Source of the DNA: Dimorphilus gyrociliatus
Lineage: Eukaryota; Animalia; Annelida
Reading direction: 5' to 3'
DNA length: 64,000 bases
NCBI GenBank assembly: GCA_904063045.1
Contig: CAJFCJ010000030.1
Location: 124,001-188,000 of the forward strand
Under the pieces are notes generated by a model, which saw only the letters and a list, made by a program, of their open reading frames with translations, searched no databases and was not told the DNA's origin. This document shows positions 44,417 through 51,113 of the stretch, piece after piece; positions within the stretch are counted from its first letter, which is position 1; each line of letters begins with the position of its first letter. The translations under genes and the position numbers were made by a program.

Positions 44417-46043
44417 TTAATCCTTTTTAGATTTTTTGAAAAATCTTAAACAACATTTCATTAAACAGAAAACAATTAGCTTTTTCATTAACCAAACAAT
44501 TAAAAGACATATAATTAATGCAATTAGCAATAAATCTAAATTATAAAGTTTATATGTTGGCATATCTATTGCTGAATGTCTCAAATGACTACCTCCAAAC
44601 TCTAATACATGTTCAATCCAATATACAGCATTCTCTAGTGGCGTAGGTTTCTGAGACTTGATAAGACTAGAAACTCGTTCTGCAGATATTTTATATGCAT
44701 TAGATTGCAGCATCTTTGCAATATACTCTTGAAGGAATGTCAAATCTTTTGTATGAAATGGTAGAAGTTCCAACATTCCATGCCTTTTCACTCGAATTGA
44801 GTTGTCCGTGCTATCCATAGGCATTGGAATAACTAACATAGGAGTTCCATGATACATTGCTTCGTAAACAGAATTTAAGCCACCGTGTGATATGAACAGG
44901 GCACAATTTTTCTTAGATAAAAGGTATGCTTGTGGAACCCATTTAAAAATATGAATATTTGGATAATCTTTATCTAAACTACATTTTAATGACCAAATCC
45001 ATTGAACATCTGGAAACTTAACAAGACTTTTACGTATGTCGTCTAATAAACTTGGATGATTGCAAAAATTCAAAGTACTGCCAAAGACAACTATGCCGAA
45101 TCTGTAAAATATGTGTAACTTGTCTATAGAAAACGTTCATTAATCAGCAATAGGTGTAAATTATTTACCTTTTAGATGTAATTTCCTCAATTTTAGGATC
45201 AATATCTGTCTTCTTCACAGGTTGAAATGCTAACATACCACCAATGTATATTATATTTGGGGTCAGAGGTCTAGGAAATTCAAAAATATTGTTTGAATTC
45301 ATAAAAAACAGTTCCGACTGTTTTCGAATTTGTGATATACTTTTGCCAGGTGAAATTTGTAATTCTGCTTTCAATTTCTCAAAGTTTTTATCTAATTTTG
45401 TTAAAAAATAGGACAAAAATAAACTGGAAATAACACTTTTCGCCCTGTCAGTTATTGTCATTTTATCTGTTAAAGAACTCATAAAAGGAGGAACCCAAGA
45501 CATTGGTGAAGGAACAACAGCTTCTGAATATGTTATGTATGAAGAACATTCAAACATAATAAACGGTTTTTTATACATTTCTGCTAAAATAAACCCACAA
45601 AAGTAAAAGTGATCGATAATTAATAAATCGAATTCTTCTAGTCTTTTCTTCATTGATGAATCTCTCAACATTTCTCTACAATCTTCAATTAAGCCGTTCC
45701 AAATAATTTTTCCATATTCATCCAAGGCAAACATTGAGATATTTTGATATAGCAAATCAACGGAAGACTTTTTTATAGTCTCTCCAATGATCTCAACTGT
45801 TTCATCCGATAGCGGAGAAGCGACATCAAAGAATGAGATATTTCCAGGATTATCTATTCGAACAGTTCCTTGACGCGAAATGCTAACATCGTGGCCAGCC
45901 TCAATCAACCCTTTTCCAAGGACAACCATATTATCTGCGTGACTCTTGGAAGCATACTTTGTAACTGGAGGTGTTAAAAGTAAAATATTCGACGCCGAAC
46001 CTAAAATTGCTAGGTGGCTAATAAACAATATTGCCTTAAACAT
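44417..46043 (-). CDS. UGT: UDP-glycosyltransferase (UGT / UDP-glucuronosyltransferase family)
   Basis: ATG 46043 gives signal peptide MFKAILFISHLAILGSAS. Exons are 46043-45169 and 45101-44417. The catalytic His is in SKSH, followed by FPRPLTPNIIYIGG, the signature WVPQAYLL..FISHGGLNSVYEAMYHGTPM, A.YWIEHV, a C-terminal TM helix and a dilysine-type tail KKSKKD. Confidence 0.95.
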
Positions 46044-47171
46044 CGATTTGATAACTGGTCGGTCTTGTTTAAAGAGTACTATGAATACTATTACTGCTGG
46101 CAACAACCTTTATATGATAGCCGAAGTTTTATCTAGACAAGATGTTTTTCTTACAGGCCTACGTTATTTTATCAGCTGATTGTGAAATATTCACTTATTT
46201 AGTGAAGATAAAATAGTTAAAAATTTCTCTTAGTTGTGCAATAAGACGGGTTTTAAATTGTTCAACTCTGAAGAATATTGTCCATTTCCTAATCTAATTT
46301 AAAGTCAAGGAAAAGCAATATAAATGAATTTAACAGATGCATAATGTCATATATTTGTTCTTAAAGTCAATTATTATGCATTTTCTAACAGTTTATGACA
46401 ATTTCTAACGTCTTTTTTATTAATAAATAACTATGCAGAACGTAATCTGCAATGTTTCTTAAATAAAGTCTACTCGTTAAAGATTAATAAATATTTAATG
46501 TATGACTTTGCAGACCACTATTTTATATAGACTTTACTCATTAATACTTAAATTACTAAAAAGAAATCGAATGATTGAGGAGTAACAAAAGGATTCATGC
46601 GGAACGTAAAGCTGCTGGATAATCATGTAAATTGGTAATCTCTTGTGCATATTATATCCCTTGACTCAGTCACGTTTCACTTACAGTCTTATCATTAGGA
46701 GAAATAATGAAATTATGCTTTTACAATGTATAATTATTTATTTTAATTAAAAAGATATATTAATGATCTATCTGAGAAAACTTTTCATTTTTTAATATTA
46801 TTAATTTCATTTGTATATTGAAAAGAGCGATATTAAACGTGGCGTATACGTAGATACTTTTTAACAGTGTTAAAGACATTGTAGCTTTGACATTTGTTAT
46901 ATAAATAACTAATTCTAGTACAGTAAATCTTTGTTTTATAACGGGGGAAAAACTGATTATACCTTTCATAAGAAAAAATTGAAAATGTACCGCAGAGTTG
47001 ACATCTGTCTCTTCAATTTGTTGATGGATCGTGTTCGATAGCTACTTTTTAGGGATTTTTATTGTCTTTAAATAAGAAAAAATTCATTAGTTTTTCATTA
47101 GTAGAAGATATAGAGTCGAAGAGAGAACGAGGAAATATAATAATTATAATAAAAGCATTTTAAAAAGTGCA

Positions 47172-48359
47172 ATGGCTCTAAGAAAATGGAGAAACTTCCT
47201 ATCCTCTTATGTATTAAGACGAAATAATAATGATAAATTAGACCATCGCATAGTTAAGGAATCAAACTCCAAAGAGAAAAGGGAAAAGAATTTATCAGAT
47301 TTCGTCAATGAAGGTGATAGCCGTTGAAACTTTAATATAGAACTTTTATATTTTCTCATTTCCTATGTAAAACAGAAAGAGAACCTTTAATAGAAGGAAA
47401 ATTTCATTTACATAATTCTTCGAATATAGATTTGGAGGTAAAACCGTAATTTCTGTAAAAGATTATAATTAATTACAAATTGATTATGGTAATTTACATA
47501 GGACTGTTACAATACAAAAGGACAGATGAAGGGTCGGATTGTTATTGTTAGTAATACTCATTTTGAAAAGAAGGAAATATTAAGGGATCGTACAGGAAGC
47601 CATTGGGATTGTCGTAATATAAGTGAAATTTTCACAACTTTAGGTTATGATGTGGAAATTTGGAATAATTGTACAAAGCCTGTAATTGTTTTCTATATAT
47701 GAAAAGAGAAATAGGAATAAAATACAGTTAATTACAGGAATTTGAGCAGAAATTAAGGAAAGAAATCAACTCGACGACTCACGAGATTGCTAATTCATTC
47801 TTCTTCGTTGTACTATCTCATGGGGATGAGAATGGCTTTTACTTAAAGGATGGAAATCCAAATAATAATAGATCTTCCGGTTTTTATGAATTTTCGCAGA
47901 TTGAAAGAAAATTTAGCAATGAAAATTGTGTAGGATTAAGTGGAAAACCTAAAATTTTCATCTATCAAGCCTGCCAAGGAAGTAGGGATAGAATCTATCT
48001 AAACTATTTTCCAGCTAATTATTTAATTATAGTCTTTTATTTTCAACTTGACAGATAGAAAGGTGAGCTGTAGCGAAGATCAGAGAGATGAAATTGACTT
48101 TTTTCACCATCCAGAATCAGATATATTAGTTGCATTTTCTACTGTTAAAGGATACGTTTCGTGGAGAAGTCCTACCCATGGTTCTTATTTTATTAGGACT
48201 TTGCTAATAGCTATCAAATATTACGCACAAACTGAATGTTTATTAACAATTTTATCAAGAACGCAAAGGTATATCGCATCAAGAACATTTAACAACTTAT
48301 ATTTGCAACAACCACTTATCAGCTGCAAGTTAAAGAAGAAATTCTACTTTTTATCGTAA
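47172..48359 (+). CDS. Caspase (peptidase C14A) with a short prodomain, 310 aa
   Basis: Exons 47172-47313, 47376-47437, 47502-47681, 47738-47981 and 48055-48359 (introns 56-73 bp) are in frame and total 933 nt. They contain RDRTGS..D, catalytic LSHG, KPKIFIYQACQG, and small subunit SDILVAFSTVKGYVSWRSPTHGSYFI. Confidence 0.93.
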
Positions 48360-48499
48360 ATAATAGTTCTCTTCGTATTTCACTTTTACACCGATATGCT
48401 GTTAAGTGATAGCAATACAAATTGTATTGATAAATGATTTAATCATTTACCTAAGCATGGTTGCATGGTTATATATATATATAACGTATTTTCATTATT

Positions 48500-48550
48500 T
48501 TCATTGGCTAATAGGATGTGGTCGCTTGTTAGAAATTAGCTCATTGGCTA
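48500..48550 (+). promoter_or_regulatory. Paired inverted CCAAT boxes upstream of the CARD-only gene
   Basis: TCATTGGCTAA occurs twice (about 48501 and 48541). A probable 62-bp 5'UTR intron (48600-48661) follows, then ATG 48671. Confidence 0.45.
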
Positions 48551-48670
48551 AAAAACTTAGCAGACGACGCAATTCCATTTTTTTGATTGATTGCTTGAGG
48601 TATAACTTTATTTTCGATTAATGAATATGCTGGATTTTATAATACTCGCTATAATATCGCAGGGGAAAGA

Positions 48671-49046
48671 ATGGAGATTAATGAAAAATCTGTGATAACT
48701 GGTAATCTTGTGTACTTAATGCAGAATCTAGATGCGGATATATTATTACTCGCAACTTGCCAAGAGAAACTAATTTTAAATGAACATGATGTTGAAGAAA
48801 TAAGGGTATGACGATTACATTTATTTCAAAGCTTTATCTAATTGACAAAAATTTGAATTTTAGAATTGTTCAACTACGTTAGAAAGAAATAAACTGTTTT
48901 TGGACAAGATTCAAAGAAGACCTGTTTTTGAACGCTTTTTACAAGTATTAAGGATCGTGCAGAAAGGTTTCATTGCTGAGAAATTACAAAATTACATGAA
49001 CGAACATCAGTTAGATGGACATTTTCAAAATGTAGATGGAAATTAA
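48671..49046 (+). CDS. CARD-only protein, 105 aa (not in the supplied ORF track)
   Basis: Exons 48671-48805 and 48864-49046 (58-bp GT-AG intron) give MEINEKSVITGNLVYLMQNLDADILLLATCQEKLILNEHDVEEIRNCSTTLERNKLFLDKIQRRPVFERFLQVLRIVQKGFIAEKLQNYMNEHQLDGHFQNVDGN*. This aligns by eye with RAIDD/caspase-2-type CARDs (ME..K.V, IL.E....EI, T...N..LLD, F..FL..L, EKL). Confidence 0.82.
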
Positions 49047-50714
49047 TTGAAGACGAATACAACATTTCAAGTACTATTACCGTAACAATTAGTATTAAAG
49101 TATGATTTTTACCTACAGCTCATTATACTTTATGTTTCTGACAAAAACGTATCGGTAATAAATTGACTTTAATTTAACGTGAGAAAAAGGAATGCTTTTA
49201 ATAGATCTCTTTGAAATAGTAAATGAATGAAGATAGAAAAAACAAACTTCTCATGACACTTTTAAATTAAAAATACAAAATAGAGTATTGCATATTAGAA
49301 AAATAGAATTTAATGATCAATCGTACAATAAGGGTTGTTTTCTTCGGTGTTAGCTAGTTTATTCTATTTGGATAAACATAAAAGAGAGACTGGCTGTATC
49401 AACTTGGAAAACAACTATCCAAGAAGATTCCTTGTAAAGAAGGATATAAGAAAAAAATCGTGCAAAATAGGCAATTTATAACGAGCTGTCCACCAATATA
49501 ATTGAAATAATTTATATTAATAACTTAAAAATGATACAAAAAATACTCTTTCATGTTGGCTAATGACTCAGCTTTCGGACACAAGTAATAACTTCTTGAT
49601 ATAACAAAATACGTTAAAGAACGGGAGAAGAATAAACTGAGGAATAGTCGAGAAAGGGGTCAAGCAAATGTATTTTCTAGAAGAATCAATATTGATGAAA
49701 GGATGCATACCTTTTATTATCATACATCACATGTATCCTATTTATATGTATTTCAAATAAGAAGGAGACAAGAATATAATATAAATTTTCAAACAATCTT
49801 CTCCCTCTTTTTCTAGATTTTCCATAACACACACTTTTATAAAGATATTCAATTTTACTGAACAGCAATTGAATAAGAGACATGAATTTTCTCATGATGA
49901 TTTATGCTTTCTTTACCACTATATCTATATTTTGTTAAATATGTATAAGAGAAATATATTTCAGAGTGTTTTGAGATTTATTTTTTCCCTTTGCAAAATG
50001 TCAATATACCACTCTCACATTTCTTATGCTCTATTGAGAAGAGGAAGTACAATTAAGACTAATGAAGAACTAGCTTCTACACCATACATGAGAAACAAAA
50101 ATCATCTATAACTTAAACGACAATTCAGAGAAAACATAATTTCTGTTTTCTTTTTGATCCATTTAATTACTTCAGAAAGAATTGGAAGAGTGACTGATTT
50201 TGTCTTTTAGGAAAAGGAGAAAACTTCAAAGGAATAAGAACTTGGGAAAAATCTAAGCAATAAACTACCTGGATGGTTAATATTAAAAATTATATATATA
50301 TATATACTGTATATATATATATATTGTATATATCTATGATTACGTAGGATAATTCTGTATGTTTTATAAATACAAAATGATTTTTAGCACATAAAAGGTT
50401 TGTTAAATATATGAAGTTTTCTTTCTTATGGATGTATATTTTGTATAAATAATTTGTCTTGTATATATAATATATATATATATATATATCACATATTATG
50501 TATTTATGTGACAGTTGTTCCAAGTTCAATGACCTTCTATGTTATATTTAAATTACACATCTCTAATTATAAAGTAATTTTAGCTCATCTTCCTCTTTCA
50601 AATCTGTTATTTTATCTAAACAACATATATATTTAAGTTTATTGAAAAAGCACACAAAAACACATAATACATAAGTAGTGCCATTTTACTTGAGTTAAAA
50701 GTCTCTGTTTTATT

Positions 50715-51113
50715 CTAATCTTTGGATGGATTGTTACTAATTCTTTCAGCAATCTTTTGTTTAAACTCTTTAACTGACCCCTCATTAAGAATATCATCGT
50801 CAACTACTATATCTGCAACGTCTATGACCAATTGAGCAATTTCCGTCTGTAAATGATCAGCTTCCGGTTTCTTTTCGCTCTTAAATTTATCTATGGTTAT
50901 TAGCTTTGAGATAAGAAGAGTTAAAAATGAAACAAATAAATTGTGCTCTTCTTTTAAAGAGTCCAAAACTTGGTCCAATTCTTCTTCATCAAAGACTGAA
51001 GTTGAGCTAAAAGTTGACGATGAATCAGAATTACAGCTTACTTCATTCCTCTCTTCCAATTTTCCTTCCGATTTTTCATCGATTGAAGAACATTCACCAA
51101 ATTTTGCCGCCAT
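50715..51113 (-). CDS. Uncharacterised acidic protein, 132 aa, intronless
   Basis: ATG in AGAATGGCG context; S/E-rich N-terminus followed by amphipathic helices (EELDQVLDSLKEEHNLFVSFLTLLISKL). Codon content is distinct from the AT-rich flanks. Confidence 0.6.
   Translation of the reverse strand: MAAKFGECSSIDEKSEGKLEERNEVSCNSDSSSTFSSTSVFDEEELDQVLDSLKEEHNLFVSFLTLLISKLITIDKFKSEKKPEADHLQTEIAQLVIDVADIVVDDDILNEGSVKEFKQKIAERISNNPSKD

Follow-up and report, generated by a model that had tools for sequence, protein, structure and literature searches.

Probable merger in the public annotation of two adjoining Dimorphilus gyrociliatus genes, an executioner-like caspase and a CARD-only gene

We examined a locus in a 64,000-nucleotide stretch of DNA from the annelid Dimorphilus gyrociliatus (hereafter the window; contig CAJFCJ010000030.1, positions 124,001 to 188,000), where a caspase gene is followed on the same strand by a small gene that encodes a CARD and nothing else. 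An initial annotation of this DNA had read the pair as an independently evolved two-gene module. Our analysis suggests that they are probably two adjoining but separate genes, an executioner-like caspase and a CARD-only gene with its own promoter region whose product would act on CARD proteins encoded elsewhere, and that the public protein in which they are fused is a merger. The contig (C30 of a 77.9-Mb assembly) carries the locus as a single copy in the genome, and with a G+C content of ~29% the locus is AT-rich animal DNA. The published genome of this species has been described as 73.8 Mb in size; its 14,203 genes are separated by short intergenic regions, the median intron measures 66 bp, and spliced leaders, trans-splicing and operons are reported to be absent from it (PMC7854359).

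Positions are those of the window, and the features are collected in Table 1. The RNA evidence consists of the spliced contigs of one run (X1) whose library type is unrecorded; such contigs drop rare variants, and their word depth is a poor measure of expression to which we give little weight. We analysed the caspase exon by exon and through residues 1-252 of the public protein CAD5125939.1, and the joined CARD open reading frame (ORF) as residues 255-359 of the same record. The Pfam cut-offs were 21.4 bits for PF00656 (Peptidase_C14) and 23.9 bits for PF00619 (CARD).

Table 1. Features of the caspase gene and the CARD-only gene, with the intron proposed by the public fused model. HMM, hidden Markov model; uATG, upstream ATG; UTR, untranslated region.
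Feature	Position	Strand	Description
Caspase exon 1	47172..47313	+	Start codon in a favourable context; first part of the prodomain; donor joint in RNA; no Pfam family
Caspase exon 2	47376..47437	+	Remainder of the prodomain; both bordering introns (62 and 64 nt, GT..AG) seen in RNA
Caspase exon 3	47502..47681	+	Large subunit begins here; P1-pocket Arg (DRTG...D); PF00656 29.1 bits, profile 2-48; aligns to caspase-3/7
Caspase exon 4	47738..47981	+	Catalytic His and Cys; PF00656 38.6 bits, profile 51-129; joints in RNA
Caspase exon 5	48055..48359	+	Asp-rich linker (...SED..DEID...) and small subunit with SWR and GSYFI; TAA at 48357-48359; PF00656 54.7 bits, profile 152-233
Annotated 'intron' of DgyrCDS14119	48181..48662	+	482 nt; donor ATG|GTTCTT, acceptor ...TCGCAG|GGG; unlikely to be spliced out of the main transcripts
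CARD gene, candidate core promoter	48501..48551	+	Two exact copies of TCATTGGCTAA (inverted CCAAT, NF-Y-type), 40 bp apart; putative promoter role
CARD transcript 5' leader	48578..48670	+	Unspliced in RNA; two out-of-frame uATGs (48621, 48627)
CARD exon 1	48671..48805	+	45 codons, helices 1-3; positions 4-35 of the HMM built from CARDs of the same genome
CARD exon 2	48864..49046	+	60 codons and TAA, helices 4-6 and a short tail; positions 38-78 of the same HMM
CARD 3'UTR	49047..49864	+	~820 nt, unspliced; contig colinear over 48863-49864

The caspase gene (47172-48359, + strand) comprises five exons that together provide 930 coding nucleotides, or 310 codons, and all four of its introns (62, 64, 56 and 73 nt, each GT..AG) are present as joints in the X1 contigs. 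Exons 3, 4 and 5 each score above the PF00656 cut-off and jointly cover positions 2-233 of the 233 in the Peptidase_C14 profile, so that both subunits are complete. The catalytic residues are in place, with the His codon of SHG at 47819-47821 and the Cys codon at 47972-47974 within a QACQG pentapeptide (47966-47980). When the protein is aligned with caspase-3/7 chains, the Arg of the xRxGxxxD motif (DRTG..D), SHG, QACQG and the Arg of SWR all fall in register, which gives it the catalytic and P1-pocket residues of a C14A peptidase. The initial annotation had called this a catalytically intact caspase with QACQG, and the profile matches on three exons, the motifs and the P1-pocket alignment bear this out. 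It had also described a prodomain of ~70 residues without CARD or DED; we place the prodomain at ~62-78 residues and find no Pfam family in residues 1-78. Upstream CARD or DED exons appear to be absent as well: an in-frame TAG lies at 47088-47090 ahead of the ATG, the RNA contig is colinear over 46963-47311 and shows no coding exon upstream of the ATG, and no CARD-like frame occurs in 46100-47520.

To which class this caspase belongs is indicated mainly by its similarity to solved structures. For residues 60-252 of the public protein the top match is caspase-3 (E 7e-24), followed by caspase-7 and by caspase-1 of Spodoptera (Sf-caspase-1), and these three account for all of the best 60 rows from the PDB; the small-subunit exon alone is undiscriminating (caspase-9 2.5e-11, caspase-3 5e-10). 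Within the genome, the caspase domain lies nearer to the CARD-less caspases on contigs C12 and C5 (81 and 78 bits) than to a CARD-caspase on C4 (44 bits). The QACQG pentapeptide had been taken as the mark of a caspase-8/10-type initiator, but the structure matches do not uphold this. Insect effector caspases carry QACQG, and the other caspases of this genome carry QACRG, QACQT and QTCRG.

The architecture points in the same direction. As in the executioner caspases (caspase-3/7, Sf-caspase-1), the prodomain is short and free of a death fold, the His/Cys dyad and the P1 pocket are present, the small subunit is complete, and the inter-subunit linker (...CSEDQRDEIDFF...) is short and, as we read its sequence, offers Asp residues as candidate cleavage sites. 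The Dimorphilus protein differs from these enzymes in that it is only ~30% identical to them, has a 9-residue insertion after SHG and has a somewhat longer prodomain (~62-78 residues). The features of an initiator are missing, in that the prodomain has neither CARD nor DED and the best structure matches, which serve here in place of a tree, are not initiators. Our sequence searches returned no close caspase paralogue in the genome, and a word search with the caspase domain yielded no orthologue, its sole matches being the protein itself and one nematode protein (30% identity). We predict from these sequence features that the protein is a divergent, catalytically competent caspase of executioner (caspase-3/7-like) architecture. 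Its lack of a CARD is then normal, because a short prodomain is usual for the caspase-3/7 class; since its best matches are all effector caspases and a short prodomain is the norm among them, we do not regard it as an initiator that lost its CARD.

The ATG of the CARD ORF (48671-49046, + strand; two exons, 105 codons) lies 311 nt past the caspase stop, and the 58-nt intron between its exons is confirmed by RNA. The ORF has its own stop and its own RNA contig, in agreement with the separate 105-residue gene ~310 bp downstream that had been proposed. The stop at 49044-49046 lies inside the mature RNA, in a contig that runs unspliced over 48863-49864 with no further coding exon, and the product has no other Pfam domain. 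The proposal that the CARD ends without a catalytic domain downstream thus holds, and in the dominant RNA the CARD is both expressed and free-standing. Candidate polyadenylation signals (AATAAA/ATTAAA) occur in the 3'UTR at 49094, 49157, 49266 and 49631.

The paired CCAAT boxes noted in the initial annotation are also present. The sequence TCATTGGCTAA occurs without mismatch at 48501 and 48541 and nowhere else in the 64-kb window, and the CARD RNA contig starts at 48578, which is 27 and 67 bp past the ends of the two copies. The 5'UTR intron that had been thought probable (~48601-48662) is, on the other hand, retained, as the RNA contig is colinear over 48578-48804; its acceptor is the same as that used by the public fused model. 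At the run of seven T at 48578-48584, the contig that covers caspase exon 5 and the spacer has one extra T relative to the assembly, and it is exactly at this run that the low-depth contig gives way to the high-depth one. Possible sources of the extra T are a polymorphism, a homopolymer error or a mistake in the assembly.

The Pfam CARD profile does not match either CARD exon taken separately, and a six-frame PF00619 search of the genome found 18 places of which this locus is not one; both searches miss the locus because the intron splits the domain. The whole ORF does match it, at 26.9 bits (E 5e-6) and thus above the 23.9-bit cut-off, with profile positions 3-83 of 85 covered. An HMM built from eleven single-exon CARDs of the same genome aligns both exons colinearly. 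The exon scores fall in the low range of those of half-CARDs from genuine members, and shuffled sequences scored as high in 11/2000 cases for exon 1 and in 2/2000 for exon 2. By profile searches, the genome as a whole has a large death-fold repertoire, with CARDs at 18 places or more, death domains at 40 or more and caspase domains at about two dozen.

Structure predictions agree with the profile. An AlphaFold2 model computed from a 12-row alignment of the genome's CARDs reached a mean predicted local distance difference test (pLDDT) score of 89.6 and has six helices, of which the first is split (5-11/13-19, 24-32, 38-45, 50-62, 67-76 and 80-99); its input was a CARD alignment, and it hence leans toward a CARD. 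AlphaFold applied to the single sequence gave a poor model (pLDDT 48), which we set aside. In a Foldseek search of the PDB, the best match of the aligned model was the CARD of Apaf-1, with template modelling (TM) scores of 0.76/0.86, a root-mean-square deviation of 1.9 and a modest E-value (0.01), and further matches were the CARDs of CED-3/CED-4, CARD8, caspase-9, NOD1 and RAIDD; the TM scores of the top matches, Apaf-1 included, lie at 0.65-0.78. Modest E-values are usual for small helical bundles. In an independent ESM Atlas model of the public protein, the part formed by residues 256-359 resembles the CARDs of caspase-2 (TM 0.89) and CRADD (0.81-0.83) and a cluster of 103-residue mollusc CARD-only proteins (TM 0.82/0.83), and its nearest neighbours by language-model features are CARD-only proteins of 96-105 residues (0.92-0.93). 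On the strength of profile and predicted fold together, we judge the CARD assignment to be sound.

When CARD exon 2 was searched exhaustively against proteins, the sole match was CAD5125939.1 / A0A7I8WCM3, which is the 359-residue D. gyrociliatus model DgyrCDS14119. This model joins the caspase up to ...SWRSPTHG to ER-MEINEK... and continues to the CARD stop. Exact-sequence look-ups of the fused protein and of its 105-residue part in public assemblies found no record. The annotated 482-nt intron would remove the last 58 residues of the caspase, the GSYFI...FYF block. Yet beyond the annotated donor the caspase frame continues without a stop for 58 codons that still resemble a caspase; these codons alone score 17.8 bits with PF00656 (profile 181-233), and by our own estimate the chance of 58 stop-free codons at the local composition is ~0.007. 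The joint 48180^48663 is absent from the X1 contigs, and both of its ends lie within colinear contigs (48055-48600, which spans caspase exon 5 and the spacer, and 48578-48804). The possibility that the CARD exons splice into a longer gene is therefore realised in the public annotation, which fuses them, but not in the RNA contigs, which are without that splice. The donor itself (GTTCTT) is weak, with T at +3 where the five confirmed donors of the locus have A or G, and the intron is seven times as long as the 66-bp genome median (PMC7854359). The start of the CARD contig just past the CCAAT pair also speaks for a separate gene, as does, with little weight, the rise in mean word depth at that point from 27.7 to 491.5.

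These observations suggest that the 359-residue public model is most likely an annotation merger. We consider it probable that the locus holds two separate genes, and that they work as follows. The caspase would, like other executioners, be activated by an upstream caspase that cuts at the aspartates of its linker, and not by recruitment through a death fold. With a promoter region of its own, marked by the pair of inverted CCAAT boxes, the CARD gene would produce an abundant transcript and from it a 105-residue CARD, which may bind through homotypic CARD-CARD contacts to one or more CARD caspases, CRADD-type proteins or other CARD adaptors encoded elsewhere, and thus serve as a small adaptor or decoy that tunes the assembly of initiator caspases. 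We place its partners elsewhere because a CARD binds other CARDs and the adjacent caspase lacks one, and the CARD protein probably has no direct action on that caspase. The tight spacing of the two genes would then reflect a compact genome (~4.8 kb per gene), although co-regulation or some common history may also play a part. Among possible partners of CARD-only proteins is the product of a single-exon 361-codon frame on C4 (L008, C4:1823167-1824180), in which a CARD is followed by a caspase domain and which is the clearest CARD-caspase of the genome; it has QRCRT in place of QACxG and AHG in place of SHG.

Several observations weigh against this two-gene reading, and we take them up with the explanations to which they lend weight. 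RNA runs continuously, at lower depth, from caspase exon 5 through the spacer to at least 48600, and the stretch from the caspase stop to the CARD coding sequence contains no AATAAA or ATTAAA. Read-through transcripts that contain both caspase and CARD are therefore likely, and a rare spliced fusion may exist, since the contigs drop rare variants. The annotated fusion could accordingly be a real isoform, in which a read-through RNA spliced from 48180 to 48663 yields, alongside the separate products, a catalytically crippled, CARD-tagged caspase-like regulator of 359 residues that would consist of the large subunit, a truncated small subunit and a CARD at the C-terminus. DgyrCDS14119 has exactly this structure, and the 48180^48663 splice is in frame. 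Moreover, the annotation pipeline weighted transcript assemblies ten times as heavily as ab initio calls (PMC7854359), which could mean either that real evidence for a fusion was found or that overlapping neighbours were assembled into a chimera. Set against this are the missing joint and the colinear contigs that cover both of its splice sites, the weak donor and long intron, and the loss of the conserved block from GSYFI to the C-terminus. The ESM Atlas model of the fused protein is also mediocre (predicted TM score 0.52), and merged models of overlapping neighbours are a frequent artefact in compact genomes. On balance we regard a genuine fusion isoform as unlikely.

The adjacency of the two genes is itself a point to be explained. 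We roughly estimate the chance of finding a caspase and a CARD gene as immediate neighbours at ~0.05 (~25 caspase loci x 2 sides x ~15 CARD genes / 14,203). The arrangement is thus mildly improbable by chance and some link is conceivable, which again counts, weakly, against unrelated genes. Such a link might be a functional module, in which the CARD recruits the neighbouring caspase in trans, as a split initiator would, or acts as its decoy or adaptor, with the adjacency kept for co-regulation. Same-strand adjacency at 311 bp and read-through RNA that connects both genes would agree with this, and the mammalian CARD-only genes that lie beside CASP1 offer a precedent. However, CARDs bind CARDs and this caspase has none; its catalytic domain is executioner-like and not initiator-like; and the mean word depth of the contigs is far apart between the two genes (9.7 for caspase exons 1-4, 27.7 for exon 5 and the spacer, 491.5 for the CARD contig), although this last point is weak evidence.

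A module of this kind might also have left traces of its origin. Six-frame scans revealed no CARD relic upstream of the caspase (46100-47520) and no caspase relic downstream of the CARD (49040-50720), with scores of at most 4.5 bits where true exons give 12-42; therefore, a recent origin by duplication and truncation is not visible. Single-sequence searches of the genome returned no paralogue of the CARD exons. The closest CARD of the genome, at 31% identity, is a single-exon 101-codon ORF on C7 that lies beside an unrelated gene, with no caspase nearby. The initial annotation had favoured duplication with truncation, or rearrangement, as the origin of the pair; the absence of relics and of a close paralogue, together with the absence of a CARD from the neighbouring caspase, leaves a recent duplication with truncation without support. 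The same findings, and the location of the nearest CARD relative on another contig without a caspase, also tell against a split initiator or an independently evolved module, and we find a working two-gene module very improbable.

The C7 ORF (L012:1483-1788, 101 codons) is one of two more single-exon ORFs of CARD-only size; the other lies on C25 (L001:1483-1797, 105 codons). Their identity to the CARD of our locus is 28% and 22%, respectively, over the full length and 31% and 21% over the CARD segments. A word search with an alignment of the three ORFs found no annotated small protein matching the C7 or C25 ORFs. Each of the two may be a CARD-only gene that the annotation lacks, or else an exon of some larger gene.

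Taken more broadly, the caspase and the CARD could form a true functional unit either through a C-terminal-CARD fusion or through a CARD protein that escorts the caspase onto a CARD platform, a possibility that we hold to be distinctly unlikely. To our knowledge, no caspase has a C-terminal CARD. If such a unit did exist, it would be a new coupling of an executioner-type protease to death-fold signalling, in a lineage that is reported to be without Apaf-1.

A further point against a functional CARD gene concerns the ORF itself. The two uATGs of its leader (48621 and 48627) open a short reading frame that runs across the main ATG in a different phase, and a search with exon 2 among 1.84 billion representative proteins found no orthologue of the CARD ORF, which leaves selection without support from conservation. 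A word-based protein search with the same exon likewise returned nothing at E<=0.001. The 105 codons might then have no useful translation, the abundant RNA being non-coding or decaying and the CARD a young or dying remnant; the lack of a homologue outside this genome at E<=0.001, the overlapping uATGs and the long 3'UTR of ~820 nt would all be in keeping with this. In opposition to it, the frame is intact across a correctly spliced intron, the product exceeds the curated Pfam CARD threshold, and the predicted fold is a confident CARD with a full hydrophobic core. The context of the main start codon is strong (agaATGg) as well, whereas that of the first uATG is weak. We therefore give very little credence to an untranslated remnant and continue to favour a translated CARD gene that is separate from the caspase.

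Comparison with known CARD-only proteins shows where this gene is alike and where it differs. The mammalian proteins CARD16/COP, CARD17/INCA and CARD18/ICEBERG share with it a size of ~90-110 residues, a CARD as the only domain, a gene beside a caspase (CASP1) and an expected homotypic mode of binding. The mammalian genes arose recently, by duplication of the CARD of the CARD-caspase next to them, and remain very similar to it. In contrast, the Dimorphilus neighbour is a CARD-less, executioner-like caspase, the best paralogue of the CARD is only 31% identical, and its look-alikes are the CARDs of caspase-2, CRADD and Apaf-1. With no CARD in the neighbouring caspase, no paralogue and no relics, the CARD does not appear to have been duplicated from its neighbour as the mammalian ones were.

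Nearest to it by features and structure are the small stand-alone CARD proteins of molluscs, placozoans and other invertebrates in the ESM Atlas, which are of equal size and have a single domain. Stand-alone CARD proteins of ~100 residues are in fact numerous among the predicted proteins of molluscs, placozoans and chordates in that resource. These clusters show no sequence-level orthology to the Dimorphilus CARD, however, and as uncharacterised predictions they are silent on function. A precedent for a decoy comes from viral single-CARD proteins such as GIV-CARD of grouper iridovirus (91 residues), which is reported to inhibit apoptosis (PMC4457926). Unlike that viral gene, the Dimorphilus gene is cellular, contains an intron and has host composition.

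Annelids have been reported to lack Apaf-1 but to keep CRADD as well as CARD-bearing caspases, of which some are of the caspase-2 type and others of the 'caspase-Y' type (PMC11463336). Retention of CRADD and of caspase-2-type caspases would fit the resemblance that the models predict between the Dimorphilus CARD and the CARDs of caspase-2 and CRADD. In animals without Apaf-1, abundant CARD-only transcripts would be plausible regulators of initiator-caspase assembly. The pair had initially been put forward as the best candidate in the window for an undescribed system, a description that does not fit two genes of known kinds; the CARD gene would be a modest addition to the CARD-only regulators. 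What is new here is a likely mis-merged public model. The record CAD5125939.1 / A0A7I8WCM3 probably combines two genes in one chimeric protein, and surveys of apoptosis genes in lophotrochozoans that use it could miscount it as a 'caspase with CARD', while the intact executioner-type caspase and the CARD-only gene would both go unnoticed.

Some minor observations concern other death-fold sequences of the genome and the neighbours of the locus. On C1, two identical, inverted 296-codon frames that bear a CARD (L010/L011; C1:2360052-2360282, + strand, and 2368982-2369212, - strand) lie ~9 kb apart, and PF00656 has no match in them at E<=0.001. Three equal-scoring caspase-domain matches on C34 (C34:95446-96078, 124915-125547 and 130408-131040) each contain three in-frame TAA codons, and judged by sequence they appear to be a recently triplicated caspase-like sequence that is either intron-containing or pseudogenic.

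Upstream, the caspase gene is adjoined by a UDP-glucuronosyl/glucosyltransferase gene on the opposite strand (44417-46969, - strand; Pfam UDPGT, 86 and 116 bits). An RNA joint at 45964/46963 (CT..AC, corresponding to a 998-nt GT..AG intron on the minus strand) connects the body of this gene to a very short initial coding exon, ATGAAAG (46969-46963). The contig with this joint, which is blind to strand, runs on into the 5' region of the caspase, and the two divergent genes seem to overlap at their 5' ends. Downstream, simple repeats rich in (TA)n occupy 50277-50338 and 50455-50501, between the CARD 3'UTR and the next gene. That neighbour (50610-51113, - strand) is transcribed (contig depth 146.5) and has an acidic, Ser/Glu-rich ORF of at least 132 residues with no Pfam family.

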